Shown: positions 32,401 through 60,579 of the stretch, piece by piece | Position numbering within the stretch: position 1 is the stretch's first letter | Layout of the letters: every line of letters starts with the position of its first letter | From: Oculina patagonica | Lineage: Eukaryota | Direction: 5' to 3' | Assembly: GCF_052425735.1 (NCBI RefSeq) | Contig: NC_135769.1 | Location: 5,394,001 to 5,458,000 of the forward strand | DNA length: 64,000 nt | The notes under the pieces: generated by a model | The model's database searches: none | Told to the model about the DNA's origin: nothing | Seen by the model: only the letters and a program-made list of their open reading frames with translations | Translations under genes and position numbers: made by a program

Positions 32401-35400
32401 CTTTTGTATGGATTCCTGGTGCAGACTGCTGATGGCTGCTGAATTGACCGGTGCGTCTGTCACTATCGAATCCTCGTGGGTTGGGTTGGTGAGGTTTGAT
32501 GATAGCTTCATCTGAGACAATGGTAAGTCTCCACTAACTGACAATGAAGATTGCAAGGAAGCACTTGTTTTTAAGGATAATCCGATATTGTCTTGGAAGC
32601 TGTTTCCGTTAGAAGCATAAACTGTGTGGGAGCTTTCTACAGATTGGTGGAGTTGAAGAATACTTCGAGAAATCAAGGAAGCAGAATAGCCACTCGTGAT
32701 ACTTGATGTATAACTTACAAGGGTGAGTCCTGGTTTTCCAGATGCATGTACGGTATCTTCCCTTGGCAGGGATTGTGTTTTGAAATTGGACAAAGTTGGA
32801 TGCCAGACCAAGGTAGATATACTCGTTTTCCTTGCACTGTTTGTATTGTTAGTACGGTGGATGGTTCTGTCACTGAGAAAGGAGCTGCTTAACATTTGAA
32901 ATCCTTCCAGTGTGGAATACATGTAAGTTGTTCCTCCTACGCTATCAGTATTTTGAACTCCTTCTTGGGGTGTTGGTAATGCTGAAGATGGTGTGCCGTG
33001 GAATTGACTCGGAGAAAGCGCGCCTTGATATTGACTTGAAGAGTGCGTAGTGCGGGATTGACTTGGAAGTAGTGTGCCATGAAATTGAATTGACGACAGT
33101 GTGAAACCGAATTGGTTTGAAGATAGTGTGACGCCGGTTGGACTTGAAGAAAGTGTGACAGGAGGTTGACCAGATAATGTAACATGGGAGTGACTTAAAG
33201 ATAGTGTGACGCGGAATTGGCTTGAAGATGGTGTGACACTATAGCCCGCTGAAGGTACTATAGGATCGGATTGATTTGAAGACAGTGTTGTAACGCGGAA
33301 TTGATTTATAGATAGCGCGACACTGGCTTGACTGGAAGGCAATATGACATCAGAATGACTTGATGGCGTGGTAGTGCTTGGCAGTGTTGTAGAACTGGAG
33401 TGGTTGGAACCTGACCATGAACTCGTTTCACCTGTTGATGAAAAAGGACAAAGATTGCAACAGTTAATTGTACGGTAGCTGCAAGGCATGAACCACTTTC
33501 AAAACTTCTTTTTCCGCAAAGAACTAAATTGGGTAACTATAGTGGATTACCTGGACATGTAGCCAACACACACTCCGTTGTCTCCCACGGCTCTCCAATC
33601 TCTGAACAGTTCTTGCCGGCAAATGCTGGAGGGGGATTCGTACAATTACGAGATCTATTCCTGACCCCAGTGCCGCACGTCACGTGACACGCTGACCAGT
33701 TGGACCAGCTCGTGTAGCCGCCATCAACCGGTGCTGTAAGAAGAACATTATGTCATCAGTTCAATTTTAATGTATATATTGTACAGCTGGTATATAGATT
33801 AAAAAGCAGTTTCAGTAAAAAAAATAAACTGCAAACTAAACATTTACAATTGCTTTTAGTATTACACTCTACTATTTGTACCTTCAATTAATGTTGTTTA
33901 TTCTATCTAACGGTTTCTTTCCGACCATGGTAAATCGAATCATCCCTTATCTTATCTTTGTGAATATTAATTAGGAAACAAGTGACAAAAAGTACGTAAG
34001 AGCCCAATGAGCCCAGTATGTAAAGAATAAGGTATGATCCCAATAGCTCCAAACTGTCAGAATGTGTGGTATGACGAAACTAGAAATATTGTACACTTTC
34101 TCAATGGACGCGACGCAGGTTACCTCCCATACGTTTGTCAGGTCACTTGGCAATTCGCCGTTCCCGTATGAAAATAGTGTGTTGACCAAGAACGCAACAC
34201 AACGGGAAAACGACCACATACCGAACATCAAACCTTTAGATCCAAAAGCTCCAACACACTAACCATTAGACAGAAACTTAATATTTTAGTTTAAAACAAT
34301 CAGTCAGTACTTACTGCAGTTTGACATCAAACAGCTCCGCCTCTCAGTGTCAGCCACGTCACCACATATCAGCTCCAATCCACTGTCAGGTAGAGGGTTT
34401 ACGCATGACCTGGATCTAGTCTGGTTTCCATGACGACATGTTTGGGAACATTCTGTCCAGCTGGTCCACTGTGTCCAAAATCCTCTGACTAACGACAGAC
34501 GGAGCGAGTACATGAGAGATTATTCTCCTTTCCCAGAAAACACTTTGGTCAATTCTTCAGCACCAAGGCGTCAACTCTTGGAGCTTTGAGGGGGTACATG
34601 CACCTCGCTCGTCAGTGATCCTTACTTTTCCTTTTATGTGCAGTTAGAGAGTTAGTTCAAGTGATGATTATATGCAGTGCAGAGTGAGTAACTTGTGCGA
34701 ATGTGATCCGACCTCAGTGTTTTGCTGGCAAATTAGCCTTGCAGCCTGTGTTATCTCGGCTTATTGTCCTTGACAGTGCATGTGTTCAATTTTATCCTTG
34801 GTTCAATTTTATATTTATTTGTTTTAATTAAAGTTATAATCATACATTACCATACCCAAAACAAAGGAAAATAAAATTTGAACCAAGGATAAAATTGGAC
34901 CAAAATACATGCAATCATGGGTAGCAGAATTTGACTGCAACCAACCAAGCACAGCGTAATCATTTTGCTTGCAATATCAGACAATTTTCGTACCGACAAG
35001 GACATTAGGGACCTTAAGGTCAGGGTACAAGTTCTGTATGAGATTGAGTACGAGAACGACTTTCGAATTTCAATTCAGTTACGTTCCCAGAGCCCTTACT
35101 CCTCCCTGTTTCTGACCAGTTGAAAAGGAAACTATCGGTGCAAGATTGGTGTGAAGGGAGTTAATCGAAAGCATAAGCACTAGTTTTAAAAAGTCGTACT
35201 CGTACTTAATCTCGTACCCCGACCTACTCTGATATGAAGGTCTCCATTGTCTTGACGTGCCACCGTATTCTAAGAAGCAATATCAAAAGAAATACAGCAC
35301 AGAAGGAAAACACAAATAAATATAGCTAGATCTAGAATATTAAATATATAGATTAAGCAAGCTCCCACGGTCCCTTTCTGCGCCAAAATCTTAAAACTCC

Positions 35401-37770
35401 ACGTTGTGCAGCAAAATTATACTAGAGCTCCAGGCTCCTCGGCGATAACTTAAGGGCTCCATGGTTCCGGCCACCCCTCCTCCCCTTTGGGCCACTGGTT
35501 AAACAAGAGTTGATTTTGTCTTCCAACTAACCTTTAAAGATGTTGTATGCACAACGAAATCCATGAAATTCTTTATCCCTATCTGATATGAACCGTATGC
35601 TCATATTTCCATCCCGTTCAAATGTCAGAGAATGATTTAACACACCGCAGTATCTTCCCATCACTGGGGAGTCAGGTGAAGGGCCCGCCAGTATCTCAAT
35701 GAAATCAAAAATGCAGCCCTCCTTGTATTCCAATGCAATTTCGTCACATTCAAGAGTGATTTGCATCGCGGGATGGAGCTGTATCGTCCACAAACAGTCC
35801 ATATAGTTCGGGTAGTTGTTAGGGTAGTTGGGCGGGGTTATTATTCCACTGGTCTGATTTGTATGTACTTTACAGTCACCTAAATGGCGGAAAATAAACA
35901 AGGGATTTTTTGTTTTAAGATACAACTTTTACTTGTTCTCTTTTAGCAGTACCATAAACCATAATAAACAACGAACAGAAAGTACGCCCACTTGATCTCC
36001 AAAAGAACTTGAGTCATGGTTATGCAATTTTTGTATAATACATCTGAAATGTTTATCTTATGTGGTGATGACTTATTATTTGTGGCACTTAGTTGCGCTG
36101 AAATGGCGTCATAAATTGCGAACTCCGCCGTCTTGCAGTTCAAGATATTTGCTGTCAAAAAAATTGTCAGAAAATTACTCAAGTCTCCAAAATGGCTTAA
36201 AAACTAAAAAACCTGGCTCTGTATGAGATGTTTTTAGACATATCGACTCTGGAATGTTTTCTTGACTCACCAGCGTGCTGCAATTGAAAGCCTCGTTGTG
36301 AGGCATCGATGATGTCATCAGAAGCAAAGTGCAATAAAAGATGAGTCCCAGATGAAGTGATCTGCGTAAACCCTGGTGTCCCACAATACCTCGCGATCAG
36401 CGGAGACGCCATGCTGTCTCCATCTCTGATTTCTAAGTAGTCTGTGTCGCATGTTGTCTGTTGGGGGAAAAGATTCACTCAGTACACTTTAAAGACCGTA
36501 ACCACATATAACCAGACTCGGGGAGTATGGGAGAAAGTGAAAGTATACTCCCTTTAATTCTTTCGCGTCCTTTGGCGTCAAATAATGGAGGGCCTGTGAA
36601 CAGTCTATCTGACACTTCGGGTGGTCCTTTACAAGATTTTTGACTGTATCACCCACTTTTATGTTCGACAATGTCACAAGACAGTTTTGAAACTTGAGAC
36701 CTACAAAGAGTCCGCGTCACAATAAGTTTGGCCACTTCGCCCTAGCTCTACATGTGTCCATGTCTTCAACCCGCAGGCAAATCCCCGAACCTCGTATTCG
36801 TCCCTTACCTGACCCCGAGGTTTCAGGCCTTCGTCCCTTACCTGGAGATCAAAAATGGTTATCTTCACTCTATTTCCAGGAGACACAGATTTGATCCATG
36901 TAAGACTTGAGTTCGGAGGATACGTGAAAGGGTAGTCTGGAGATGAAATAGAGCCTTCCCATTCTGTGATGTTTACTGGCTCTGCTGCTGAAATGCAATA
37001 AAGCGAAAGTTAGCAGCGAACAAACCAGTTGCATCTTCCGCCAACGTCCCTCTCGCATTTGAACGTGAAAAATAAATTACCATTATAACACGAAGAACCT
37101 TTAATTTTGGCGTTTACCAAATCTGGCTGAGTGCAGTTATACATTTTGTCTTCTTGAAATATCCGGTACAGCAAAATCCCGCGAGTAAAATTAAGAACCT
37201 GCATTTTTCCAAGTTAGCCTTAAAAGGTTCTTACATAAATGGTAATTAGCACAAATAAAGGCTATTTAGGTTCTTTAGAAGATCTTATTTTCTGAAGAAA
37301 AATATACATTGTTGCTAATGGAAGTTTTAGTGGTATTCAGCCTTTTGCTTATATGAAATTTGCACCATTTCATTTTTTATTTGTGATTTTATCGATAATA
37401 ATATCTTATGATTTTCAACATTAGCATGTTCATTGCAACTGGAGAGAGAAGGCTCTTTGGTGTTTCCAAAGAGGATCCAGAATGATGACTTATTTTAACC
37501 CTAACCCTAACCCTAACAAAAATAAGAACCTATTTCCAAATTTTAGGCTAAAGAGGTTCCTATAAGGAGGGGCTCTAATTGGCTAATTTTAGCCTAACAG
37601 GTTCTTATTAAAAATTAGGTTCTTACCCGCGGGTTTTTACTGTATATTGAATGAAATTTACAACAAATTTTTAGTACACGCTCTAAAACCCCTTTGAAGA
37701 GACTACAGTTCTTACCTTGTGATGACTTGAATACGAGGATGCTTAAAAAACAACAGATAAGAATACATTC
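29499..37770 (-). CDS. Type-I membrane protein: signal peptide, CUB, CUB, TSP1, TSP1, Ser/Thr-rich mucin stalk, TM, cytoplasmic tail (about 1280 aa; ATG exon not located)
   Basis: Minus-strand exons with consistent phases: 37770-37716 (ECILICCFLSILVFKSSQ, signal-like); 36987-36842 and 36457-36271 (CUB1: GSISSPDYPFTYP..CDTDYLEIRDG..IARYCG..LHFASD..RGF); 35879-35532 (CUB2: PPNYPNNYPNYMDCLW..CIFDFIEI..GRYCG..FISD); 34488-34315 and 33733-33551 (TSP1: WTQWTSWTECSQTC..RSRSC; GGYTSWSNWSACHVTCGTG.RNRSRNC); 33431-32052 and 31686-30910 (S/T-rich); 30088-29499 (TM LVPFLVIIFVIAVVLITYYL plus tail, stop at 29499). Confidence 0.88.
31827..31879. repeat. (TCTG)n microsatellite
   Basis: Visible directly, in an intron of the CUB/TSP1 gene. 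Confidence 0.95.
37167..37643. mobile_element. TA-flanked MITE carrying a short (TAACCC)3 telomere-like run at 37496-37517
   Basis: TACAGCAAAATCCCGCGAGTAA ... TTACCCGCGGGTTTTTACTGTA. Confidence 0.7.
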
Positions 37771-40700: not shown

Positions 40701-42502
40701 AGATTTCCATACTTTTTCAAAAATTCCAGACTCTGTCGTCTGCTTGTTCGAGTGAAGGAAGTGAGGATGACTAACCAGTAGGGCGAGGTTTGAGATAGCG
40801 CCTTTTTACGCACTGTGTTACCCAACTAACCAGACACCCGCAAGGCACTAGGCAATGGAGTTACAGCTGTGACATGGACAAAATTAACTCGGATTTTTTT
40901 TAATTTTAGTTTTGAATTAATATCATTCACAATGTTAGTTTACGAGCAATGGGTGACAAAACGGAAATCAGAGGAAACTGGGAAATGTTTGATAATGGAC
41001 CGTTCAGCACTTGAAGCTGATTGATGAATATATTTTGCCACTTAAAAAGATTTCACATACGAAAACGGAACACAAAACTATATAGCTAGCATCCGTTCCG
41101 AGTTCCTTTCTCGTGAGTCACATGAAAAGAAACGTGCTTTTTACCATCAGTTCCAAACTCTTTGAATATAATAAGGACTTTTTCAGACTGGGTGTTTGCG
41201 AACTAACAAAACTTAAACACTTCAACATTAAAACTCAACGTCGTGTCTTTTATAAAGTGGAATTATTGATAAGTCACTTGAAAACCGTCAAAGATGCTTG
41301 GCTTTTGGAGTACGCTAGAAACTCGGATAAAATCCGAAGAATTTGCTGGATAATAATATATGTTGTCATATTTATATTAGTAAAAAGCGAAACATTTACA
41401 AGCTTGCTGAGCAGTTCGAAGAGACACTCGTAAAACAGGTTATCCTAAGACTAAACAATAATTTATAATAAAAAGAAAACTCAGCCACGATTCACTTCTG
41501 AATGATAAGCAGTTTTAATTAACCTTTTAACTGCTGATAAGATGGCATACATTCATATTAATAATAACACAGGCCACTTGAGAACCAATAAGATGCTTGG
41601 GCTTTTGAGTAGCCAATTGAATGCTCTTGACTTAACCACACCACCAGCGAAAGACCTCCGCTGTAAAATCTGCAAGAGGAACACACAAGAAGAGTAAATT
41701 TACAAATAATTATAATTAAAAAATTAACTTTTACAAGGCTTATAAAACGTGAACGACGGTGTAACCGTGTTTTCTTGTAACGAAAAATTGAAGCGACGTT
41801 ATAAACCATTGTTCTTTTGGGACACTCCTTTGTTGAAGTTATAGAGATAATTATTAAGAGATTAGATAATAATACTAGACAATTGAAAACTGGCCACAAA
41901 ATGGCCACGAGGCAATAATTTTCTCTGGAATGCCAATCGGGGGAAAGATGGCTTGTTGCCTAGTCCTTAATAGTAGAACACACGCAAGAATGAAAGAAAG
42001 ATTTTTACAACGCGATCTTCGAAATCTTTGGTAAATAATTCCTACTTTGAAACTAAATCTCAGTAATTGGTATATTTGTATAAGTGGCCGACATTGCGCA
42101 AGTGGATTCTCGTAGAGGTTGACTTTCTTCGCCGACACGGAACAGAATTCCTGGACTTTTATCTTATATATTTACCAAAGAATAACGCCACAATAAATAG
42201 AGATAAGTCTTATTAATTTTGCGGTTGCATTGCTCGGCCTCTTTTTATGGAACCAAGCCGTTACATTCTTCTGAAAACAAAGACGATACAATTGTTGTAT
42301 GCAAGTGTCTGTAAATCTAGTCACGCCAATTATCTTAGGTATTATGCTTTGAACCAATCAGCGAGCGCGCTTAAGCTGATAACTTATGAATCCGCGTCAC
42401 TCTATTTCCGATTGCTCTTTTGCATATGGAGGTCAAGATTACAAAAGATTTCAGCTTCTTCTTCTAGTTCACCGGCTGCACACATAACAACAATCAAGAA
42501 AT

Positions 42503-45500
42503 ATGTCTTCCTATTCAGAAACGTCGAGCGGTAAGTTTCGATACGTTGTTTGTTAAGCTGTGGTTTTGACAGCTAGATGGACAAGTTTAGAGTCCGAAAG
42601 TGGGAAAATACGCCGTATAAACTCTCGCTTGTTTGCATGCTAAACAGTAATGACCTCAAGATCAGAATCTTTCGTTGAAGGCAGTTAACAGATAAATTGT
42701 TTATTGCTGTGAATATCGCTTTCACTTGACCCGAATGCTAAAAGTACCCCGCGAACGACTGCATTCTTGATTTTGGTCGTTTAACGGCATTCTTATCGAA
42801 ATCTTCCACAATCATTGAATACCTGATAAATGTCATTGCAATTTAATACTGCTGTAATTTTAAATCGTTCTTTGAATGTATTAGAGAATTGTTGACAAAA
42901 CAGTGTTGAAGCGTTTTACTTGGTGCAATTTAAAATTAAAAGCTTAATAAAGAGAAAATTTCTTGTTTCTAAACAGAGGAGAGGAGGCGGAGGAGACGTG
43001 AACGCGCCGAGCAAGAAAACTCCGCTGAGCCTGAGGAAATGGTAAAATGGAATATTTTAGTAAACTATGCATGCTAATTATTGCTGCATTGGCGTTCTAA
43101 ACTCCCTCTTTATGCAAGTAATAATTCCCTTTCTGCGTTTAGTTTCGTATTCTGACCAAAATACCGTCTTTGGAAATCGATTTTAGCCAGCCATCTTCAG
43201 ACACAGTTGTTTGGTGTTGAAACAATTAATAAAACTTTTAATTATATGTACATTCCTGAGGTGTGTCATTACCTTCACTCGACACGAAAACGTGCATGTT
43301 CGTATTTGAAGCTCTATTTTAAAACCTCCAGGACTTTCCGGTTGTGGATGCTATTATTATTTTCACTCGTTCGCAGGACAAGATTCCCTTGTTGACATAA
43401 AATCTACCGTATCGCGTATATGCAGTTTGTTTTTAGTGATTATCTTGATTTAATGATCTTATCTCGCTCGATGGTTTGCCGTAGTTGGATGCGTTCGTCT
43501 CGATCTCTTGTCGTGGTCACAAAACAGTAGTGTGTTTGTCTTTCTGAATACAAAAATTCATGTTTAGTAGATTTTGAACTGGGGATGTCAAGCAAACACT
43601 GTCTTTGGACTCCCATAAATTGAATTTAGGGTCAGATTTTGTGGTTTTTGTCAATTACACTGTACAAATGTAGAACAATTTTGATACAATAAAAGGTTTC
43701 GTCTTTATATTCGCTCAAATTATTATATCTATTATTTAGCAGGCTGAGTGAAATTTATCACGTACAAAAACTAGATATATACATGTTTGTGTAACCAATA
43801 TATTTTTCTTTTTGCCGGGAGGGCCGGGAAGGGGGGGATGTGTTACATGCACAAGGTGTTTATGTAGAAAGAAAATGATATATTGTAAATAACTTTGGTG
43901 CAAGTTTAAAGCTCCATGTTTGGCAAAACAATATTAATCTGTTGCCGCTTTCCGATAAAGTTGCAAATTTTGGCTAGTTTGGGACTTAGGAATTTGCCAA
44001 GACTGTGCTGCACAATTCAGTGTACAACAATAATTTCTGCAGCTTGCTTATCTGTAAAAAAAATAAAGACTTCCATTTGGCACAGACAGAAAGAAAGAGT
44101 GCAGTATATTGTATACAGCTATTTCGAGAAACGTTGTCGGAAAAAAGCACAAAACTGCACAAGCCAATCCCTAAAGGTAGTATGGGTAGACGTATTGAGC
44201 TACTGCACGTTTTGAATACTAATGAGATATAACAACAAAATAAGCGCAATTTTCAGGTTTTCTTTCTTTTCAGACATGTAGAAACGAGGTACGTTTAGAC
44301 CCTCTGAAGTTCAGAAGAATTTTTCCTCACTCAAAGACATGCGACAGTAAATGTAAAGCTACAGATATAGGCCTCCTGAGAAGAAAAACAAATTCTCCAC
44401 GTGCAAAAATACAAACTTGTAAATTTCCTCTAGGCCAATATGCAAAATTCCAGTGAATACCCAGACCACCTTTCGGTCTTGTCGCGTGCACTTTGATGTT
44501 TTTTTTTCGACAACCTTTCTCGAAATAGCTGTATAGGAAATGAATATTTATAACTGAAGATGATGACCTGGAAAATTATATATAAAAGAAGCAAAAAATT
44601 GCAAACTAATCAAGTTTAACTTGTGTTTTCACTTTGACCTGGCTTTTGTCAAGAGTAGCAAAAAGTAACTTCATCACAATTTTCTGATAACTAATATAAA
44701 CAATAGACAACCATATTTGTATTTTGGTATTAGACTGGAACTAGTTTGCAATGAAGGCTAATGTGGAAATCTTTTCAAATGCAAATGCAATGAGGCTTGA
44801 TCTTGTTAATGATATTCCCCGCATTAGTCTCCATTGTGCAGTTCCAGAAAATATCCATACTACCCCATGGAAAGTCATTGGAAATTCTGAGGGGATGGGG
44901 TGTAGGGTCTCAAAAACCAAAGTATGGAAATGATCTGGAGTTTCCAGAGGGGTGGGGTATTTAACCTAAAAGCCTTCTGTGGGAGGGGTATGGATAATTT
45001 CTGGAACAACACATTACAAGCTAGTTCCAATCCAATACCCAGAATACGAAAATGGTCTATAACAAATGTCTGACTGACTAGGGTCCCTTCAAAGAGTCAC
45101 AAGAAAACATTTCAATGGAAAATGCCATTGTTTTTTTAAAAAGTTCTCCTCATTGATGGCCATACATTTCTTTTAAAACATGCTAAGAGAATTTAATGGT
45201 TCATCAGGATAGTAGCCAGTCACGCTACTGACTCCAAAGCTCAGTCAGTTTATTATTGATTTTAAAATTTTCCCTTGATGTACAGGCTTATGACTGCCCC
45301 CACCCCTCTGAGTATTAGTTGGTCAGAATTTTGTGAAATCAAAATATCCAGATTTCAAAAGTCACAATTATATTGCATATGGGAATGACAATATTATTTC
45401 TTTTTTAATACCCCTTAATTTAATTAGTATTCGCCATTATCTTATTCTTTAAATTATACAGTAGCTTTGCAGTTGTCAAAAAAGATAAATATTCAAATAT

Positions 45501-48500
45501 CTGGGTCATGGTTCATTTCCTGTTAGTCTTTTCTGTTTCAATTTTTAGACAAAATGAAAGCTTATTTTATCTTTTATGTAACTTGAAATTGTTTTTGAGT
45601 TTATGATGAATTGAAAAATGTAAAAAAGGGAAATGCACTCCTTGAGAAAAGCATAGTGTGGGTGACAGCTGTGCTCTTCCTTGAAGAGCTGTTCATTGAG
45701 AAGCTACAAGTAAAAAGTTCTGGATCTTTCTTTGACATAATTCTTTTTGCATAATAGCTTTTTAAGAAATTAAATATTTGAAGCACTAACCTGTCATAGA
45801 TTCTTTGTATTTAGCCTTGTCATATATTTCTCTTCTTGTCGCCTTTGGATTCAACAACTGATCTGCAGTCAGCAACAGCACTGCCAAGCTTTATACATGT
45901 AACACGCTTCTTCCATCCTTAGGCATAAAGACTCCTTCTGTCAGAAAGCTTCATGTAGCACTTGTGAATTAGTTTTCTTTTATTTGACTGTGCTTTTCTT
46001 CATTGTGACATTTTGCTTCTTTGGGAAACCTCCTAGAAAAAAAGGAAATACACACAAAACTTGGTGCCAAGGATTCTACTTTCTATGATGATAAAACAAT
46101 TTCAGAAATGAAACATTTTTTCTGATTCATTTTATAAGGCTTGTAATGGTTATCACAAAGTCATCAAATTGTGCAATCTGTACAGTGATTTCATGTGATT
46201 CCTGATGAAGCATTAAGGAGCCAGTAAAATGCAGACGTACATCTGTAAATATAGTTTCTCCAGTATACATGTAGATCTAATGGTACAAATTACTGAGCTG
46301 TGTCAATTCTTATCTAGCAGAACACCCATCGACATGTAAACATTTCAAGAAAATCATCCCTTTCTATCAATGATTTTGTGTTTGCTTAGCTTTCTTGGGC
46401 ATGTACTTCTTGAAGAATCTTTCAAACAGAAGTAGATACAGTGGCAAATATCTCAGTGGTATAATTATCTCAGTATTCCAGCCCTGCATATCTCCCTGCA
46501 TGTACAATGTACATCACTGGCACAAGGTCGCCTGATCTTTCTTTTAGCAAAATAAAATGATAAAGAAATTTGTACCTGAACACTTGACTGTACACATTGT
46601 ACACTTCTTTGCTTGGACAGGCATCAGTCTCTATTCTTGTATGTGATGGAATGTGCTTGGTTAGTTGACCTATCTCAATGTGTTTAATTTCCACTCCAGA
46701 GTTGCGTGATTCTTGTCAGTGAAAACAGCAACCAAACCCTAATGTCTATATTTACATCAAAGATAGCTGTAGGTTTCATCAGTGTCACAATTTGATCCTT
46801 TGTCATTCTGTTCCAAATTTCATAAGTTTGCACTTCATCAAAACAGATGTAAATGCACTCTGCTGTTATTTCAGGGATTGACTTTTCACATGAAATGTTT
46901 TTAAGGTTCATTTTCAGGTATAAACAGTGTAGCAAGTTAAGAAATCCAAGTTGGGATGCAAAATGTCAATTAATAGCATTGATGTGTTTGTGTAGCCCCA
47001 TGACAATTGGATAACCACAACAAAGAGCAATTGATTGAAACTTGCTCAACAATAAACTAAGGCTTGTTTTGTTGTGGGGGACCTGGGGCTGATGGAAACA
47101 AGAGATAGCCAAAGAAAACTAATGAATGTATGACACAGATTGTAAGCATTCCAGAGGCCAGCTAATCAATACATTAGCAGACGCCTTGGCTGCTGTCCTG
47201 TACTGCTGTTTTGAAGCTCCCTGTCCTCTGCACCTTAATTTGCTGTGATCTTCACAGAGCTCTTTCACCAAGACAAGCTTGCCATCTTGCGTGTAGTTGA
47301 CTCTGTCATTTTAAGTCTTCAGATACTAAAATGGAGGTAGGGTAACATGATTTTTTGCCTTTATCAAATGTGAAGTTGTCATTTACAGAGCAACATGACT
47401 GCTCAATGGAGGCAGGGTCACTCCCTTGAATTGAATCTGTTTTCTAACTCTATTCCAAAGTTCTTCATGTGCAAAATTGCATGAGATCAACTGAAGCTCT
47501 GATTTCTAAACATAAAGGCATTTTATTCAGTAGACATGGAATTGCACTAAAAATTCTAGAGCCAGCCTGTTTCTCTAGTTAGTCTGGTCAGCTCACTGAG
47601 CCTTCATTTATGTAAATTATTTTGTTTACACTGGGATAATCTGTAGCTCAGCATTTGATCACTGCTTACATGTCACCAAAATTTGCCCCGGAGAATAGTT
47701 TCTCGTGTTGTTTTGGCTGTGTTTATAACTTCCATCTGTGCAACAGATCCCATCCATAAATTTCATCTTCTCATGAGAGACCTTGAACATAGTATTTTGC
47801 TTGTTGTGTTACAATGGGGCTCTTCTTGGTCAATTAGCATAAATCTGCTTAGCTGGGGCAATCTGTTCTAAAAGTGAATCTCAGAGATTTCTTTGCTCTC
47901 GAGCCATACTCTTAATATTTATTTTATTTACGTTGTTTGTGTCTAGCCACTTTTGGCATGTGGATGCTACAACAGAAAGGCTCAAAGCCAAATGATGAAA
48001 GCTTATGATAACTGCTGGATGCTAACCCTGAAGTAAATTTGCATTTCGCTCACAGCAGAGTTCCCATTATGGCTTATATTCAACTGTGTGTAATCCATGA
48101 AGGTCTTAGAGTTTTAAAATGTATTTTTTTAAAGACCCTTGCATGCATTTCAGCTCTTGCTGCTTACAGTGTACATGTATCTGTCAAAACTACAGGAAAC
48201 CGGCCTCCTTTTATTTCACAAAATGTTTGTGTTGCATCTGTATTAAACATTCTCGTACAGAAGGGTATCTGTTTCCACTTATAAGAAATTACAACCATTT
48301 TTCTGTTTGGCTGAAACCTTAAAACTGATTTTTGACTCTGTCAAGGGTTTGCAGTGTGAACATTTTTGGACAAAACAATAATTACAGGCTTTTAAACTTT
48401 TCTCTATATTTGGTCATAGTATTTGATTCAGTGGCTTTTTAACATATTCATCCATTCAATGAATCAACCAAGAGGTCATGCCATAAAATGACCCCACCCA

Positions 48501-51500
48501 ATTCTACAGAAATTCCTGAAATGTTTTCTCTGAGCTCTGTGGCTTATCTGGTAGATTTTAGCTCCAAAATGTGCATGGAGTGCTTTAAACACCCAATTAT
48601 TTGATTCTGTAGGAAAACTCATTGAGAAAAACTCTTAATTAACAATTATCTGCATGCAAAAGCATTAGAAACTTAAAGAAGAGGTGAAGCACAGTAATTG
48701 TAGTGTGACACTGTTGCTCTATTTGTATAAAATTGCTTTGTCAAATATCTGCAGTTGTTAAGCTGTTGACAAGAAACCCATGAACTCTTGAAATTTTTGC
48801 TCTGTTGCTGCACTGAACACAATAAGTGTTAAAGTTTACATAAGTTGGAATATTTGCTTTAGTGGATTTGGCGACTGTTCATTTAAAAACATGAGACAGA
48901 TTTTTCAAGTGCTCAGTGACTAATTAGCATTTTTTTAATTTGTAGAGCCATGTATTGTTGAACCAATTTATGATAAATTAGTAAAAAAAAATTTCACTAC
49001 AGTTGTAACATGCAATGTTCTTAGATGAATGTACACATAGATAAGAGAGCATTTTTTTCCTCTTTCCCATTTTGGAAATCAAAATTTCTCAGCAGCCAAA
49101 ACAAATTTGTACTAATTGACATCCCCTGTAATGACAATTTCTATGTATAATTCTGTCATTAATTATTGTTGTACACATTGAACTTATGTGTCCTTGTTTA
49201 ATTGTCTAAAGCTCTAATCATTCAGATCATTGAAATGCAAGCATCTCAGCTATATTCCATGTACCATCAATCAATCACAGCATTATTTTATTGGCATGGC
49301 AGCAATTACTTGCTTCCATGTACATTTTAAACAGCACATGAATTTTGAAGTCAAATTAAATCACATACAATATTGTAAATGCTGATTCAGTAAACTACAT
49401 GTACACTGTATCACTGTAGTCAAGGCCAAGGCAAAGTCTTACTTGTCTGCAATACATGGGAAGAGTGAAAATTACATAATCATGTAGTTTAGCTGGTCAT
49501 TGAAACTAATTGGTCTGTTCCACTGTGATGTTGTTTGCTGTCAAGATNNNNNNNNNNNNNNNNNNNNNNNNNNNNNNNNNNNNNNNNNNNNNNNNNNNNN
49601 NNNNNNNNNNNNNNNNNNNNNNNNNNNNNNNNNNNNNNNNNNNNNNNNNNNNNNNNNNNNNNNNNNNNNNNNNNNNNNNNNNNNNNNNNNNNNNNNNNNN
49701 NNNNNNNNNNNNNNNNNNNNNNNNNNNNNNNNNNNNNNNNNNNNNNNNNNNNNNNNNNNNNNNNNNNNNNNNNNNNNNNNNNNNNNNNNNNNNNNNNNNN
49801 NNNNNNNNNNNNNNNNNNNNNNNNNNNNNNNNNNNNNNNNNNNNNNNNNNNNNNNNNNNNNNNNNNNNNNNNNNNNNNNNNNNNNNNNNNNNNNNNNNNN
49901 NNNNNNNNNNNNNNNNNNNNNNNNNNNNNNNNNNNNNNNNNNNNNNNNNNNNNNNNNNNNNNNNNNNNNNNNNNNNNNNNNNNNNNNNNNNNNNNNNNNN
50001 NNNNNNNNNNNNNNNNNNNNNNNNNNNNNNNNNNNNNNNNNNNNNNNAAATATTCCTGCTTGTTTTTAGATCAATAATCTTCGTACCCAAGTTAAGAACA
50101 CAGAAGAGGAGAACCAGCGCTTAATCAAGGAAGGAAAGTAAGTTTTTGTGTTTGTACATGCTAAAATTCAAGCTTGGCTAGTTTCTTTTGTACACGAGAC
50201 AAAACTATTGTGTGTACGCGGGCTTTTAACTAGTCGAGGGTATCGAAACGAAATGATGTGCCCTTATTGTGTATTTAAAGTTAAATGTAGCTTCATAACC
50301 TTAAATGTTACAATAGAACTTTAAAAACATACCTTAAGAAAGAATGAGACTTTGTAAAAGTCCTTTGTATTTTCCCGTACTGAGCATTCGTTTCTTGCAA
50401 ACGTTCTCCTCAAGTTGTCACGTGACTTTCCGTGGCGGGAATTTGGCTTGCACCGCCTGCGCAGGCAGATTTTGTGGGGTAGCCCTCGGGGTAGTATGTA
50501 CGATGTGGAAGAAATACAATTTCTTGTAATTTAAATGCAATTTGTTTTTCTTCAGGAAAATGGCTCCACAAAGAACAGTGGTAAGTCGTGTTATTACAGT
50601 ACATTTATTTGTTGATTTTGTTATTCTGATTTCTTTCCAGTATTGATCATATAAGAAGATTCATTGTTCCAGCCATAGCTAAATTTGTTGTTAATTTTCT
50701 TTTTTTCTTCTTTCATAAACAGAAGAAGACCCTTCCACCAAAGGTGAATTAAATAACATAATCATTAATGTACAAGGCTACGGTTAGCTAAGTACATGTA
50801 TATGGAAACTTAGTATATAAACGAGAAGGGACCTGGGAACTAGATGCCACCTGTGATAACCTGAAGTGTTCTGTTGAAGGGAACTTAAAAAAATCGAAAG
50901 GAGTTTCTTACATTTAGAAAAATTAGGGACTTGTTTTCTAAAAATTGTGTGGGATGTACTTTTGCTTTAATTTCAACGGATTGGACTTTGGTTGGGGTGT
51001 AGAATAAAAATTCCCAAAAGTGTTAATACCAACAAACCCTTTTGTTGACGGCTTTCACTTTTGTCTATCTCGTCCAACAGAAAGGAAACTTTGTAAACGT
51101 TGTGCGTAAAGCCCAGGCCGCCGCATGGGAGGAGAAATTCATGGCAATGAAGGCAAAGCAGAAAGAATCTAACAAGGTCAGTTTAATAACAAGTTGTTTA
51201 ATACACTCAACTCATGGAAACGAGTACCATTTTCGGTTGCCTTCGGCATTTTCGCTGAGCGCGCGGTGATCGTCAGAGGTTGCTAGGGCTAGGCAACGAA
51301 CCTCGTGCTGTTTACTGATTGGTCTATAGGAATCGTGAACTCTTCGGTTTCATTCACGAGGGTTTGCCCAAAATGGTACTTGTTTGCAGTCCACCCGTAT
51401 TGTAAATGGGTGTTCTGATACTTGCAGGGAGTTCAGAATTCATTCGGGGTTTTCCATGTGAATGAATGCTTGGAAACTTTGCGCGTTTTGTAATTAAGTT

Positions 51501-52402
51501 CGATCCAATATCAGGGGCAAGTGTAATACCATTTGGGTTTCGCGGTTAGGTCCAATTGCTTTTATCATTGCAGAAAAGAACATTCAATGTGTTTCTCTAA
51601 CGAAACAAAACCCGAATCAAAACACTTTAGACAAATGATGTAATTTGTTGAAAGCAAGTAGTCGATCACATCACGATATTGTTTCTAACAAGTGCTGATG
51701 TTTCACAAACCTTTTTCGCGACTTCATTTACTCGAAACTTCGGAAACACGCGATTTTAAAACCGTCCAACAACAGACTTTACGACGAAGAAGGTCCAATG
51801 TGGGAAAAGCCGTCGTGATGGAATTGTGGATCAGGAGAAAATAAAGTGATAAAAAAGGTTCGTTGAACGGGCAAAAAACCTCAGTTTTATGCAAAATATT
51901 TCGCGTTTGTAACTTTTACTATAAAATTCGTTTCCTATAAAGACAAAAGTTGAGCTCTTTGTAACTCTGGGTAACGCGTAAATGTTAACACTGTAAATTT
52001 TGTCCGTTACAGATGAGCGAAGAACTCATGAGCAAAATGAACCGAGTCAAGCGCACGGACGGCCCTCTGCTCAGCGGACTGAAGAAGGGCAAGAAGGACA
52101 AGAAGAAGGATGAAAAAGAGGCCGCCCCAGCCTGGTCAAAGACCCAGCTGAAAAAGGGAGGCAGCAAAGGATGGGAAGAAGGCAAGAAGGAAGGCGAGAA
52201 GAAACCCGATTGGTCAGGACGTGTGGCTCTTAAAAAGACCGAGAAAAAGGATGCCGGAGATCTGGGCGACAGCAAGCGACAGGACTGGCGGGATGGCCTG
52301 AAGAAAGCTCCCAAAAGCCCTGGTGTCGAGGGAGGCGAGGGTGACCCGGAGTGGAAAGGTGTGAGCCTGCGCACAACCGGCCGTCACGACGAAGATGATT
52401 AA
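42503..52402 (+). CDS. Troponin-I-like, Lys-rich putative actin-binding protein (partial; middle exons probably in the N gap)
   Basis: Phase-consistent exons: 42503-42530 (MSSYSETSS), 42977-43041 (EERRRRRRERAEQENSAEPEEM), possible 15-nt micro-exon 44274-44288, [gap 49548-50047], 50070-50137 (INNLRTQVKNTEEENQRLIKEGK), 50556-50580 (KMAPQRTV), 50723-50743 (KKTLPPK), 51081-51176 (KGNFVNVVRKAQAAAWEEKFMAMKAKQKESNK), 52013-52402 (terminal exon with EKKPDWS and QDWRDGLKK). AATAAA at about 53250. The gene structure is well supported; the product call rests on remembered motif similarity. Confidence 0.7.
44702..45061. mobile_element. MITE with a nested 'TTCCAGAAAATATCCATAC' MITE (44836-45012)
   Basis: ATAGAC..GTATTTTGGTATTAGACTGGAACTAGTTTG / CAAGCTAGTTCCAATCCAATACCCAGAATAC..GTCTAT. 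Confidence 0.7.
45600..48000 (-). pseudogene. CpG-decayed coding-like relic (dead gene or transposon ORF) antisense within an intron
   Basis: Minus-strand segments read as protein interrupted by stops, many of them TGA in Arg/Gln-rich context, e.g. 46032-45791 GFPKKQNVTMKKSTVK*KKTNSQVLHEAF*QKESLCLRMEE..IQRRQEEKYMTRLNTKNL*Q with AG/GT flanks, and MAREQRNL*DSLLEQIAPAKQIYAN*PRRAPL* near 47900. The region is strongly CpG-depleted. Confidence 0.35.
49548..50047. other. Assembly gap (500 N) inside the troponin-I-like gene
   Basis: Run of N. Confidence 1.
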
Positions 52403-53249
52403 ACGCAAACTTGTTTAGGATTAGGTAGTCTTGCTACGAAAACAGGTTTTCTTAAAGCATTTTAAAAGCCAATTTTTTCGGCTCTTTTTGTATGAATTTT
52501 TTTCTATTATTAAGCCCGTTTAAGCCTTGTAGTTAAACCGAACCCGTAGAAAGTGGCTCAAATGAGCGCAAAAAGGAAGTAAAAGGTGTTTTTTTGGGTA
52601 GCTCCCACCCTCTTACCTCCATAACTCTGTACGAAACTAGAATTCTTCTTAAAATGCCACAATGACAAAAAGCACGTGGAATTAGTTAAACCCTTTTAGC
52701 CATGTGGCTACCATACAAATTCTCCTAACTTTTCTCCATACAAAATATACAGCACTGGTAAGAAGAATTTGTTTTAGTGCTGATCGAAAGCGAGATTCTC
52801 GTATCTACTTTGTGTAATACTGGGTGAAATAGTGAGGAGAATTTATGTGTGGATCACTTTCGCGGCTTGAAGGGTTAACAGTCGGTACGATATGTAGTTT
52901 ATGGAGTTAAAAGGGTCTTGAATCATTCCTTCAGTTCACTTATAATGCATCACGAACTCATTGCGTTGCCGTGGCTCGATCGATGAGTGCAGTTATAAGA
53001 GAGCTGGAGGAAAACCGGAAGTAAGTATGGATAAAACAAATGACGGTTGGAACGGATGCTCAAAGTCAAAAAGTTGTTTTTTAAAGTTGTGTAAGTCATT
53101 GTAGTTCTTGTGTAATTTTCTTAGTTTTGCATTTTTATATTGTCTTAAGCGTCATGAGAGTTTTTTAAAGTGAAATATATCCTGTAATCGGGCTGCATTA
53201 AATGTCAGAATCATATCGTTTGTATTTTTGTTTATTTTTTCTATAATTC

Positions 53250-55381: not shown

Positions 55382-57856
55382 GGTCCTGAGTGGGCTCGCA
55401 CTGCCAAGAAACATAAACCAATAAGTTCGATCCTCGGCAGACCGAAAGAGCATTCCGAAGCAAAACCGAAGACTAAACCGAAGCCCGATTGGAAGTCGAC
55501 CTCTCTACGAAAGAAAGACCCGCCTAAACCCGCAATGACACAATCGGACTATTGGAAAGAGGCGAGGCCAGACTGGGCCAAGGGAAAGAGTCCTATCGAG
55601 AAACCCAAAGTACCAGACAAGCCAATTGCAAAAGGAAAGGCAAAGGATTACTGGGAAGAGGCGCGGCCAGACTGGAGCAAAGGAAAAAGCCCTGTGGCGA
55701 AGCCAAGTACTGGAGATCTAAAGAAGGTTGAAGAAAAGAAGAAGTATGATTATCCAACGCCAGATTGGGCAACTCGTGTGCGTAGCAAAGATAAGGTGAG
55801 ATTACCTGACAAAAACAACAATAACAACAACAACAAAACGTTTACTGTGATCGTCCGGGGTCAGGGTAGTGTTGTTAGTGACTGACGTTTCGGCGACTTG
55901 ACCGCGGTCGGAAGCACGCACGTTCAGCCTAATTTTCACCTTCAGCTAATCTCAAACCCTTATCTTACTCTGTCTGGCGCAAAAAAGTGAAAGGTGAAGT
56001 GCCTCCCTTCCGCTTGGCCGTGGGAGATCTGAGTTCTAGCTATATAGATTACCGCTCACCATCAATAGACCTCAATAGTCCTTTTCAGAACTACCCTCAT
56101 TCGCGGACGATTACACTTCATACGAACTTATCTTTTGGGTTTAAAATCTAGTTCAAACAGACGAAACAAAACAGCGTTAACAACAGCAAAAACAAAAATA
56201 ATCAATAAAGGAACTGTAACAGTGAAAGCATTGTTTCCTTCGTAATAGAAAGGCTGTCTGGTATGATAAAATCCCTAACTTAGCTGGCGTGTTAGATAAT
56301 TCAAAGAATCTATTATCAATAACAAAAAATAATTCAATTTAAGAAGTTGGCTGTATGATTGCATCCCTATTTCGTTCCAAGCGCCTCAGATCCTCTGACA
56401 ACCCTCTACCTTAAAGCCTTAAAGCGCACTGTTATTTTTTATTCATTGACAAAGGGAATATCCACTGCATAAAACATTCCGGTTTAAAAGCTTTTGCTGA
56501 TTTTTAACTTCTTTGTCCCCTTTTATTAAGGCCTCAGACGAACAAGACGGCAAGAAAAGTCTTTTGAAAGCCGAGTTGGAGAACATGTTTGGGAAACCCA
56601 AACCGAAAGTGGTCAGTATTAAATTGTTTTAAAATTTCATGGAGATGGAGCTCCTTACTGAGTGTCGTAAAATGCAAAGCAAAGTTATCACATTTGGCAG
56701 TGCAATCGACAGTGCAATCACAATTAGCCATGTTCTAAACGAGCAGGGGACTGGGCACGAACATATTTTCTCTTCGGTACAAACATTCAATATCAATTGA
56801 ATTGAAAAATGGGGCATGTCATCTGAAAAAGCATCCAAAAATTAGTAATTTCACCGAATTTGATTGTTATTGGTTTAAACCCAAAGGCATGGTATACTTT
56901 TAGTATGGATTGGAGGGACAGGCGTCCTCCAATCCATACTAAGCTCTCTTATTTTAAAAGTGTACCATGCCTTTGTGTTTAAACAAATAACCACCAAATT
57001 CGTTAAATTTACTAATTTTTCGATGCTCTTTCAGATTACGTGCCCCATTTTCAATTCAATCGATATTGAATATTCGTACCAAGAAAAAAATATGTTCGTA
57101 CCCAGTCCCCTGCTCGTTTAGAACATGGCCAATAAAAGTAAATGGCCCTTGAGCCGAGGATGCCTAGGGACTAGGCTGTTGTTCAGCTTTTTTAATTTTT
57201 TTAAGTCCTTATCAGATCCAACGTTAAAACAAATGTATGACTATCATTAGGGAACATAGTAATTCAAAGTAATTTTTGCAATGTTTTATTTCCCTTTTTG
57301 CCCAACAAACAGAAAAGACGCCATTCCTCTGAAGACATGGCGGAAAGTTATCGCGCGAACATACGGTGAGTGAAATCAAGTTCCTTGAATGCGCCTTTTA
57401 GTTTAGGAAAAGCACGTATGGTAAAGGTTACTCACCTTAGATCAAAGGTGTGTTGAGCCTAAAACCTGCGTTGGAGCCTATATCCGGTTTCCGTAATATG
57501 AAGTGACTTGGAGTATTTCTTCTCCCCTGCATGTAATCATCGTTCATCGTTCAAGGAAGTCGTTTTCTCCTTATGTAGCTTTACTCATCTATAAGATGCG
57601 ATAACTAAGCAAAATACAGAGAAACAAATGTGCTTGCTGAGTTTCTCTGCCGTCGAGACCCGTACAAAAGCGGATAGAAGGGAATTTGTATTGCCAGTGC
57701 TTTCTTTGCTAACGTACTTCAATAATAAATTTTAAATCCTCCGACAGAAAATTTGCCGACCACCGTCTAAGTGTCAGAATGAAAACGAAACATCGACCTT
57801 CATCCAATCCCGTCAGGCAGCTGTTGTCACGTGATGATATCAGGAGTGAGCTGTGA
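55382..57856 (+). CDS. Lys/Pro-rich PDW-repeat exon block ending in a supervillin-like motif; probable alternative 3' end of the upstream gene, or a separate gene
   Basis: Exons 55382-55795 (GPEWARTAKK..KPDWKS..DYWKEARPDWAKGKSP..DYWEEARPDWSKGKSP..PDWATRVRSKDK), 56531-56611 (ASDEQDGKKSLLKAELENMFGKPKPKV), 57313-57365 (KRRHSSEDMAESYRANIR), 57748-57856 (KFADHRLSVRMKTKHRPSSNPVRQLLSRDDIRSEL*). All are GT-AG, with phases 0,0,2 consistent. Confidence 0.75.
56726..57130. mobile_element. About 400-bp foldback/palindromic MITE in an intron
   Basis: GCCATGTTCTAAACGAGCAGGGGACTGGG ... CCCAGTCCCCTGCTCGTTTAGAACATGGC; the arms are complementary nearly to the centre (TTAGTATGGATTGGAGG/CCTCCAATCCATACTAA). Confidence 0.85.
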
Positions 57857-58044
57857 GCTACCAACAGGAAACACAAGGCACAATTAACAAACCTAACAAC
57901 ATAACTAGCAAAGCAGCGCAATCAAATTCAGTGCAAGAGAAGATGACTTTATCCTCTTTCAGTAAAAGTAAGCGTGCACCATAACTTGTTTGTGCACGAT
58001 AAAGCATGAAACAGTTGTTAATTGGTTTGAATCAAACAAACATT

Positions 58045-59561
58045 CATCCTCGGAGACCCAGGGGCAGTTAGTGGGGCGAGGAAAACGCGAAAATGCGGGT
58101 AGAAAATAGCGCGAAACTGCGAGGGAAAAAATCAACATATAAAAGTTGTATTGACTGAAAGTGCCCCTGGGGAAAGAGTCTTACCAGACCAGTTCAAAAA
58201 GCTCTCTGAATACTGCCTCCTGATTGGGCAGAAAAATCTTTTGTATTCCCTTTGTATTATTCTGCCCAATCGGCGACCAGCCTGACTACAGTCCTTTTGG
58301 TGTGTTCTCACACGAAATATGTACACAAAGCCAGTTCGTTCGCCATATCTGTCTTGCTTGTTCGCCAAGAATTTGCTCGGGAAGGAAAAGTTTCGGCTAG
58401 TGCCTCCCCTGGTTGAAAACGTCGAAAGTTTGACGGCCATGCACGCGGAGAAACGGCGGATTCTTCAGATTGTGGTTGATCGCAGGTATCGTAACACTTG
58501 CATGCTGTTTGCGAGTTTTAAAAGTTTGTGTGCGATATGCTAGTTGCACTGCTGTAATGGATGCATGTTTTCAGATTTTTTTCTGGGAAGATCAATGACA
58601 GCTTAACGCGAAACTTTTCCAAACAAGAGTAATTTTTTTACGAACAAGCCCGGCAGATGTGTCAAGCGGCCGTCTAGCTACGCGTGCAAAACGTGCAGCA
58701 GCGATTCCTAAGTTTTTTATAGGTGAGATAATAGAAGATCGATCGCAGCTGGAAGCGAAACTACAACAACAAAAAAAGTTTATTTAAACAATCATATTAT
58801 TTACAATATTTTTCACCTCTCACAATTAGCCTAGTTATTTGAGGCGGGAGGTGAAGAAGAAAATGAAGAAGAAAAAAAAAATAAACAAAGTTACAAAAAG
58901 GTAATACCTTATCTACATTAAAGAAAAGATAGTAATAAGAAAGATAACTTCGAATATCATAGCAATAAATTAAAATAACAATGTGTTTTAAGTTACATTA
59001 AGCTAAAGATTTTAGGAAGTCAAAACTATTTCCAAACAAACTTTCAAGACCTTGCATTTTGTAAATTTTTCCGTCGATCGACCGATTAGATACGCGCGCG
59101 TGTAATGCGTGCAGCACCAATTGTAGCACTCAAATGACGGTCATATTTCCCGAAGACAAAATGTTCCCAACACTTCACATCCAAGTTGAGGAGGCACTAG
59201 CCGAAACTTTTCCTTCCCGAGCAAATTCTTGGCGAACAAGCAAGACAGAAATGGCGAGCGAACTCGCGAACGTGGCTTTGTGTACATATTTCGTGTGAGA
59301 ACACACCAAAAGGACTGTAGTCAGGCTGGTCGCCGATTGGGCAGAATAATACAAAGGGAATACAAAAGATTTTTCTGCCCAATCAGGAGGCAGTATTCAG
59401 AGAGCTTTTTGAACTGGTCTGGTAAGACTCTTTCCCCAGGGGCACTTTCAGTCAATACAAATTTTATATGTTGATTTTTTTCCTCGCAGTTTCGCGCTAT
59501 TTTCTACCCGCATTTTCGCGTTTCCCTCGCCCCACTAACTGCCCCTGGATCTCCGAGGATG
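58045..59561. mobile_element. 1.5-kb foldback/Mutator-like element with about 360-bp TIRs
   Basis: 58045-58405 is the near-perfect reverse complement of about 59190-59561; flanks ACAAACATT / ACAAACAAT (9-bp TSD, 1 mismatch); explains the mirror-image ORFs 58132-58440(-) and 59229-59474(+). Confidence 0.9.
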
Positions 59562-59629
59562 ACAAACAATCAACATATCGGTTGATTTCGTCACCGAAGT
59601 ACGTTGCTAAGCAACATAACATATTCCTG

Positions 59630-59784
59630 AATGTGATAAATGATCATCGCAGTGAATTTCCAATTTAAGCAATTGGAATAAAGAAGCCTGAAAAAATTCA
59701 GGGCTTCAACGGGATCCCGTTGAAGCCCTGAATTTATTCCAATTCCTTAAATTGGAAATTCACTGCGATGATCATTTATCACAT
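59630..59784. repeat. Palindromic repeat (hairpin with no central spacer)
   Basis: ATGTGATAAATGATCATCGCAGTGAATTTCCAATTTAAG..GGGCTTCAACGGGATCCCGTTGAAGCCC..CTTAAATTGGAAATTCACTGCGATGATCATTTATCACAT. Confidence 0.85.
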
Positions 59785-60579
59785 TCATATCCATCCACAG
59801 TTCATATATGAATCATTTCATATACATTACATCATAACATATTCCTATTGCGTCATGCTGGCGTGACATTATACTCGTCACCAGGCTTCACCGGTTAAGA
59901 GACACGATGGGTTTTGGGGACGAAAATGTCACGGAACACGCGTGGTAGCGAGTAATCGTGCTTTTCTGATTAGGAAATTAATTATTGCCAAAAGCGGCAC
60001 TTGTTTCCCCAACTGATATTGAGACAGTTATTTATTATTTTTACTATTACGTCATTTGACCATATAGGGTCAAAAGAACATGCCATATACAAGAGCTTAT
60101 TGCAGTGTAGTATCCAGTTGTGGAGGTAAATAACGTGAAAAATGTAATGGGATAATAAATCCATTTATGGTGGTTTTATAAATATAATATTTGTAGACAT
60201 TAAGGTGAATATATTTGTTTCTTGGTCTCAGTTTTGAGACGCAAGGATGTAAATTTGAGGATTTTCTTGTAAATTTCCGTATAATGTTATAAGTATTTTA
60301 TTCTGTCCCATTATATTGAGACAGTATAGACTGTAAAAGTTTCAAACGAACGCATTTAACCGGCAAATAGGTTTCGATCGATACAAGTGTTTCGAAAACA
60401 CTTCAGTGAGCAATGCCAGCACCGTCAGCAAGGTAATGTGCAAACATTTATTTATGACAATAAAATCAGTAAGAAGACACTGACAGCAAGATTTTATTTA
60501 AGTTTTAAAGTTTTAAAACGTAAAATGAGCTCCCTCTCCGTTTTAAAGTATAATTCAAGTACATGTATGTACAGTTTTT

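Follow-up and report, generated by a model that had tools for sequence, protein, structure and literature searches.

A 64,000-nucleotide stretch of the Oculina patagonica genome (NCBI RefSeq assembly GCF_052425735.1, contig NC_135769.1, positions 5,394,001 to 5,458,000 of the forward strand; hereafter the window, numbered from its first letter) carries a cnidarian gene that is intact, is strongly transcribed and can begin with either of two first exons and end in either of two C-terminal modules. Its product, to judge from orthologues probably about 400 residues long, resembles troponin I (TnI) in a manner that is non-random at the motif level, yet membership of the Troponin family cannot be demonstrated for it, the defining profile of that family giving no match. 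We tentatively read it, with slightly less than even confidence, as a cnidarian thin-filament-type protein that resembles both TnI and caldesmon and is produced with alternative first exons and tails. The original prediction, made from the DNA alone, had proposed an unrecognised, pre-bilaterian regulator of the TnI family: the gene, its layout, the order of its motifs and an intron position have held up and the family-level profile tests have not, so that a pre-bilaterian relative of troponin is an unproven, testable lead and not a result. Nor is the gene wholly unrecognised, since RefSeq models of the locus already exist, some of them auto-named 'troponin I-like'; what is new here is the candidate relationship together with the architecture, neither of which had been described.

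Over positions 42000-53000, which we read and assembled by script, seven plus-strand exons follow one another with canonical GT-AG borders and consistent phases (Table 1). All of the tiny, phase-consistent exons that had been predicted are present at their coordinates, and their translation is the spliced peptide given for them. For RNA evidence, Logan contigs from four runs bearing three organism labels were compared with positions 46903-52902, exons 1 and 2 lying outside this stretch. The joints 50137>50556, 50580>50723, 50743>51081 and 51176>52013 all appear in these contigs with GT..AG borders, the last of them in four runs at a depth of up to 8600. Since all four downstream joints are seen in RNA, and since depth over the exons (10^2 to 10^3) is far above that over the introns (3 to 25), we conclude that the gene is real, spliced as proposed and abundantly transcribed. 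The transcript with the first of the two tails (tail A) has a 3′ untranslated region that extends past 52894. Exons 1 and 2 are assigned from splice consensus and from likeness to the N-termini of Acropora and other orthologues; by tblastn, exon 2 is 48% identical to residues 11-35 of the Acropora protein P0051, both ending ..EEM. The exon at 50070-50137 is 83% identical to its Acropora counterpart and has its intron at the same position in Desmophyllum and Paramuricea, and the micro-exon KKTLPPK is found in Acropora, P0031 and P0045 and is skipped in the Desmophyllum model P0006.

Both ends of the gene vary. A contig of run X13 (depth 2410) covers positions 47190-47337 and carries the alternative first exon; its loose end runs on, in frame, as in the 'MEDEAAKRRE' isoforms of Acropora, and this continuation is absent from the window. 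At the other end, an X13 contig leaves the exon 51081-51176 and enters the first letters of the exon 55382-55795, which resembles the tail of Nematostella isoforms (tail B). The terminal exon of tail B shows 67.5% identity to the final 40 residues of Nematostella P0025 and, because it must be entered in phase 2, at least one further exon should lie between 55795 and 57734.

About half of the coding sequence is in or around an assembly gap. The frames are compatible across the gap, since both the end of exon 2 and the start of the exon at 50070 are in phase 0; no direct join between the two was seen in the RNA contigs, exon 2 being outside the compared stretch. Contigs of three runs extend 243-255 nt upstream of 50070, and the examined part of this extension was not found anywhere in the window, even when three mismatches were allowed. 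Residues 31-242 of the 426-residue Acropora P0051 (about 212 residues, half of the protein) likewise gave no tblastn match in the window. Because both the transcript overhang and these Acropora residues go unmatched, several coding exons, with about 0.6 kb of coding sequence, lie in or around the gap, and since the equivalent exons cover about 3 kb in Desmophyllum, the gap must exceed its nominal 500 N. The long helix of the orthologues falls in the missing part, which is where a coiled coil had been expected to lie.

The layout of the protein is the same in two alignments and two AlphaFold models of orthologues: an Arg/Glu-rich, alternatively spliced N-terminal extension, a helix of 24 residues, a loop, a helix of about 65 residues, a linker, a basic helix and a Lys-rich tail. 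The long helix is of the coiled-coil type and internally duplicated, and the linker that follows it contains a conserved E-G-K-K-x-A-P. Most columns that are invariant in the family (F, V, K, W, E, K, F and K) fall in the basic amphipathic helix (26 residues, G-x-F-x-N-V-V-R-K-A-Q-x-A-x-W-E-E-K-F-x-A-M-K; hereafter the Trp helix); this segment, the GNFV..WEEKF of the original prediction, is the most conserved one across Anthozoa and Scyphozoa. The tail is disordered and Lys-rich and contains four to five copies of [KR]-P-x-W-x(3-5)-L-K-K (the W modules). AlphaFold predicts helices at residues 3-26, 35-99 (predicted local distance difference test score above 90) and 121-147, followed by the disordered tail; the Trp helix is at 121-147 in P0011 and at 135-160 in P0032, and the model of the jellyfish orthologue has the same layout as the first model. 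The order of helices in the two models is comparable to that of TnI, single-chain models of long helices being unable to define a fold, and searches of the PDB with VIA-align and Foldseek returned generic long helices only.

An exhaustive phmmer search with the last exon yielded only eight relatives (E of 0.001 or lower), none of which was named or recognised as TnI. Word-indexed searches added full-length relatives from Actinia, Nematostella, Exaiptasia, Acropora, Desmophyllum, the octocoral Paramuricea and the jellyfish Rhopilema. The family thus covers Hexacorallia, Octocorallia and Scyphozoa, with no bilaterian relative found in these sequence searches. Since corals, anemones, an octocoral and a jellyfish account for every relative, the host is a cnidarian, as had been supposed. 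Scleractinians are the nearest relatives (identity to Acropora of 77-87% for individual exons), and orthologues with the same exon chain exist in several genera; in Nematostella the gene has at least 38 isoforms.

The names that these proteins bear in RefSeq differ by isoform (vicilin-like, trichohyalin, ZC3H13, ATRX, caldesmon, troponin I, 'troponin I-like'), and isoforms of the one Nematostella gene carry five different names. In Acropora the 'troponin I-like' label is attached only to isoforms with an extra Arg/Glu-rich exon, whereas the C-terminal motifs are common to all isoforms; the names therefore seem to reflect low complexity. We rejected the label, which tracks the low-complexity N-terminus, as evidence of homology, and count such names ('troponin I-like', 'vicilin-like', 'ATRX') as evidence neither way. 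A literature search found no paper that ties this gene to troponin. On Desmophyllum pertusum MU826853.1 (L016; 2929-2960 and 6506-6715), the GenBank model OS493_028626 (P0006) lacks its 5′ part, and its final 45 residues, which match the window in another frame, result from misreading the frame of the Lys-rich tail; the Desmophyllum helix-1 exon contains an extra G that shifts the frame.

For comparison with TnI itself, insect sequences were obtained by scanning metagenome contigs with the back-translated motif KKPDWSKGK; nine of 11 loci found in this way are full-length insect TnI mRNAs (Pfam Troponin E of about 1e-41). The TnI motifs that the original prediction had listed are correct on these real sequences, and the order in which it had placed them matches insect TnI; the same motifs are present in the indexed text of a 1991 Drosophila TnI (heldup) paper. 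Several database models of insect TnI (L014, P0083, P0133 and P0171) join mutually exclusive exon-6 variants in one protein.

Aligned against insect TnI by hhalign, the N-terminal halves of the cnidarian proteins give P values of 0.0064 to 0.0074, with ..FRR[IV]VEQRE-loop-helix paired with ..RRRIIEERCG-loop-helix and ELNKLRSDL with EINDLNAQV. The C-terminal halves give P 0.0022, and the tail again P 0.0056; here the Trp helix is paired with GKFVKPTLKK-VSKYENKF, W-x-QTKLKK with F-RNQLKxVKK, and EKxKRPDWS with EKEKKPDWS. Column shuffles reach neither score (0 of 60 for the C-terminal half), and the C-terminal score is reached by none of 60 block-5 shuffles. In Smith-Waterman comparisons, Exaiptasia against TnI gives p below 0.003 by window shuffling and 0.007 by full shuffling. 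Moreover, tail A and tail B contain the exact 7-mers EKKPDWS and PDWSKGK, respectively, both of which are found in the single TnI site EKKPDWSKGK (p 0.003 by composition-preserving shuffles). This C-terminal D-W-[SR]-K site of TnI, the Trp position of which is kept from insects to vertebrates (PDWSKG vs GDWRKN), is present in four to five copies in each cnidarian protein. The inhibitory region of TnI, G-K-F-[KV]-[RK]-P-x-L-[RK]-[RK]-V, has two partial candidates, neither with the full motif: E-G-K-K-[VM]-A-P directly after the long helix, picked out by Smith-Waterman, and G-[GN]-F-V-N-V-V-R-K about 24 residues later, picked out by hhalign. Finally, when 550,129 Swiss-Prot models were searched with Foldseek, the best match was Caenorhabditis elegans TnI-3 (E 0.12), followed by caldesmon, with further TnIs at ranks 11 and 24.

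Intron positions were compared with the TnI gene of a single species, Chironomus riparius, in which one intron directly precedes ISDLNAQV and another lies ahead of KKPDWS, both in phase 0, and a third interrupts the F of GKF in phase 2. In the coral gene, the introns directly ahead of INNLRTQV and ahead of the tails (..SNK|GPEW) are in phase 0 and the one in the K that follows E-G is in phase 2, so that one position is exact and two agree in phase and are one codon off. The exact one, the intron before INNLRTQV, is also found in Desmophyllum and Paramuricea, and its counterpart before ISDL in a dipteran TnI bears out the fly-type match that had been claimed. At the start of helix 1, the conserved cnidarian intron is in phase 1 and that of TnI in phase 0, and the intron in the loop of TnI has no cnidarian counterpart.

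A series of other results weighs against a thin-filament reading modelled on TnI and caldesmon. No significant similarity to the Troponin profile was found: Pfam Troponin (PF00992, gathering score 26.2 bits) has no match at E up to 10 in 13 cnidarian sequences and the exons of the window, whereas insect TnI, our positive control, scores 135-143 bits. Pfam Caldesmon (PF02029), WH2 and Thymosin do not match these 13 sequences at the same threshold either. Profiles of the cnidarian family find no TnI, troponin T (TnT) or caldesmon in the PDB, and two feature searches of a language-model (ESM) atlas gave nothing above chance. A hidden Markov model (HMM) that is narrow, being built from insect TnI only (the best 120 matches listed were all from insects), detects vertebrate TnI in the PDB at E 1.5e-22 and TnT at about 1e-6; on the cnidarian proteins its scores are negative and equal to those of reversed copies. 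Because this profile detects TnT and misses the cnidarian proteins, the cnidarian family must be much further from TnI than TnT is. Among the alignments, the N-terminal hhalign score is matched by 13 to 22% of block shuffles, hhalign probabilities are only 5 to 13%, and Smith-Waterman p values range from below 0.003 to 0.27, with four of six pairs weak or not significant. Foldseek with the jellyfish model returned no TnI among the top 30, and the TnI match of the first model was itself non-significant. In the same direction, native Aurelia actomyosin is reported to be free of troponin (PMC5958069). Pfam scans with single exons and full-length proteins otherwise gave coiled-coil noise, and PDB matches from phmmer and profile searches were discarded as noise, TnI (1j1d_C) appearing once at E 0.49.

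Set beside known systems, the cnidarian protein shares with TnI a charged N-terminal extension with alternative exons, a short helix, a loop and a long helix that ends I-N-x-L-x-x-x-V with a phase-0 intron just before this motif, a G-K-x-x-x-P segment adjoining the end of the long helix, a basic amphipathic helix with [WY]-E-[EN]-K-F, and a C-terminal E-K-K-P-D-W-S / P-D-W-S-K-G-K. It differs from TnI in having a long helix that exceeds that of TnI by about 20 to 30 residues and contains an internal duplication, a helix 1 that falls short of its counterpart by about 15 residues, about 24 residues between the end of the long helix and the GNFV helix, and four to five copies of the W motif in place of one; the Troponin HMM does not match it, the family being far more diverged from TnI than TnT is. 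With caldesmon it has in common a charged, helical and alternatively spliced N-terminal and central part and C-terminal basic segments that contain Trp; caldesmon stands at rank 2 (non-significant) in the Foldseek search, and one Nematostella isoform is auto-named so. Unlike caldesmon, the 13 sequences give no match to the Caldesmon HMM, and the motif sequences differ. In caldesmon such Trp segments bind calmodulin and actin, and the protein suits smooth-muscle-type regulation. There is also some likeness to thymosin-beta and WH2 proteins, in that the tail modules end L-K-K-T-E-K-K and the spacing from Trp to L-K-K resembles the WH2 motif I-x-x-G-x-x-L-K-K; in contrast to these proteins, the AlphaFold models have no three-turn amphipathic helix before the modules, and neither Pfam entry matches.

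If the protein does belong to the thin filament, its parts suggest how it could work. The long helix might dimerise or run along tropomyosin, the Trp helix could be where calmodulin or some other EF-hand protein docks, and the repeated Trp/LKK modules could grip successive actin subunits, in which case the choice of tail would alter valency. A protein of this kind would regulate or stabilise the thin filament in a TnI- or caldesmon-like manner; binding to actin, tropomyosin or calmodulin and a function in muscle are what this layout would predict. Such a role would accord with descriptions of cnidarian regulation as smooth-muscle-like (PMC13485128; PMC5958069).

True descent, in which the cnidarian protein would be a very diverged product of the TnI/TnT ancestor, seems to us rather unlikely. 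Under such descent the helix 1-loop-helix 2 unit would be the precursor of the IT arm, either the G-K-K-x-A-P segment or the Trp helix would correspond to the inhibitory/switch region, and the W modules would be a multiplied version of the C-terminal actin-tropomyosin site of TnI. Four or five anchors do share their order, the tail motifs fall on positions conserved from insects to vertebrates and supply an exact 7-mer in each tail, one intron is exact and two are near, alternative splicing of a charged N-terminal extension is common to both, and the top Swiss-Prot match of the anemone-type model is TnI. Against descent, every family-level test fails, the TnI profile that recognises TnT does not recognise the cnidarian family, the inhibitory region can be aligned with either of two segments, the helix-1 intron differs in phase and the loop intron is missing, the Foldseek result was not replicated with the jellyfish model, and cnidarians are not known to have troponin C (TnC) or TnT as a partner. 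Also doubtful, and well below an even chance, is a 'proto-troponin' of a single chain retained by cnidarians: it would descend from the ancestor of TnI and TnT, pair through its long helix with a second copy or with tropomyosin, have calmodulin instead of TnC as its switch, and clamp the thin filament by means of its multiplied version of the C-terminal actin-tropomyosin site of TnI.

We regard it as improbable that the protein is an unrelated charged coiled coil, for example a nuclear or cytoskeletal scaffold, with no thin-filament role and with Lys/Trp motifs that arose by composition or convergence. The best Pfam, PDB and VIA-align matches are indeed generic coiled coils, the varied isoform names in RefSeq are typical of low-complexity matches, and the N-terminal half does not beat its block-shuffle null. 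This explanation sits poorly with two Trp-containing exact 7-mers that both fall on one TnI site, with an order-preserving C-terminal alignment that beats both nulls, with the strong conservation of the Trp helix and the W modules across cnidarian classes, and with the very high transcript abundance and isoform number of the gene. Isoform diversity of this kind is typical of tropomyosin, TnT and caldesmon genes. That the exons are chance open reading frame (ORF) fragments or a pseudogene, for which nothing but their small size speaks, is refuted by spliced, high-depth RNA in four runs and by orthologues with the same exon chain.

Table 1. Exons of the TnI-like gene and the assembly gap within it (positions in the window).
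Feature	Position	Strand	Content	Basis
Exon 1	42503..42530	+	Start codon, MSSYSETSS; phase 1 out	GT donor and frame; N-terminus like Acropora P0051 and Actinia P0004
Exon 2	42977..43041	+	Start of Arg/Glu-rich N-terminal extension, ends ..EEM; phase 0 out	AG/GT borders
Alternative first exon (5′ end uncertain)	47190..47336	+	ATG at 47331, encodes M-E; donor GT at 47337	RNA contig, run X13
Assembly gap	49548..50047		Covers several coding exons: rest of Arg/Glu-rich extension, helix 1, most of long helix	Transcript overhang and Acropora comparison
Exon INNLRTQV..LIKEGK	50070..50137	+	End of long helix; phase 0 in, phase 2 out	RNA joint 50137>50556 in three runs
Micro-exon (K)KMAPQRTV	50556..50580	+		Both flanking joints in RNA contigs
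Micro-exon KKTLPPK (21 nt)	50723..50743	+		Both flanking joints in four runs
Exon KGNFVNVVRKAQAAAWEEKFMAMKAKQKESNK	51081..51176	+	Conserved amphipathic basic Trp helix	RNA joints
Terminal exon, tail A	52013..52402	+	Lys-rich, four P-x-W..L-K-K modules including EKKPDWS and QDWRDGLKK, then stop	RNA joint; homologues P0001 and P0049
Tail B exon	55382..55795	+	Phase 0 to 0; GPEWARTAKK.., twice RPDW[AS]KGKSP, TPDWATRV	RNA contig
Tail B terminal exon (5′ border uncertain)	~57734..57856	+	Needs phase 2 entry	Likeness to Nematostella P0025

Elsewhere in the window, an importin-7/8-like gene lies upstream on the plus strand (4466-28000), with HEAT-like exon ORFs after the first coding ORF and a second assembly gap of 163 N within it (14485-14647). 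Human IPO7 (11p15.4) is on the same chromosome arm as TNNI2/TNNT3 (11p15.5), which makes this neighbour a possible lead to macrosynteny. On the minus strand, positions 29499-36478 hold Ser/Thr-rich, mucin-like ORFs (30905-31708 and 31834-33489) and CUB-like ORFs (35527-35925 and 36197-36478), which probably form one gene for a secreted or membrane protein. Just downstream of the tail B terminal exon is a near-perfect inverted repeat (58044-58407 and 59190-59562; arms of about 365 nt, 96-99% complementary, about 780 nt apart), followed by a second hairpin of 55 nt (59628-59787); the repeat may be a transposon or a palindromic duplication. A repeated element that encodes peptides such as EIPEGWGG has at least three copies in the window (44860-45000, 6251-6496 and 8983-9310), one of which is inside the large intron of the TnI-like gene.

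All components of troponin are considered bilaterian novelties, and caldesmon a vertebrate one (PMC5167519), while cnidarians are described as having no bona fide troponin and a smooth-muscle-like regulation of muscle (PMC13485128); reviews and recent cnidarian cell atlases concur that troponin is bilaterian and that cnidarian muscle is under myosin-linked regulation of the smooth-muscle type (PMC5167519, PMC13485128, PMC12305882), which agrees with the premise of the original prediction that the complex is described as absent from cnidarians. A conserved and abundant cnidarian protein with a layout like that of TnI and caldesmon and with the C-terminal motif of TnI gives the question of troponin's origin a concrete candidate, one that can be tested in Nematostella, where knock-down is feasible and atlases exist. 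If its similarity to TnI is convergent, a short actin/tropomyosin-binding motif would have evolved twice. If the relation to TnI is true, thin-filament inhibition would predate the split between cnidarians and bilaterians; and if the 'proto-troponin' proposal is right, the inhibitory arm of troponin would be older than Bilateria, and only its partnership with TnC and TnT would be a bilaterian novelty.

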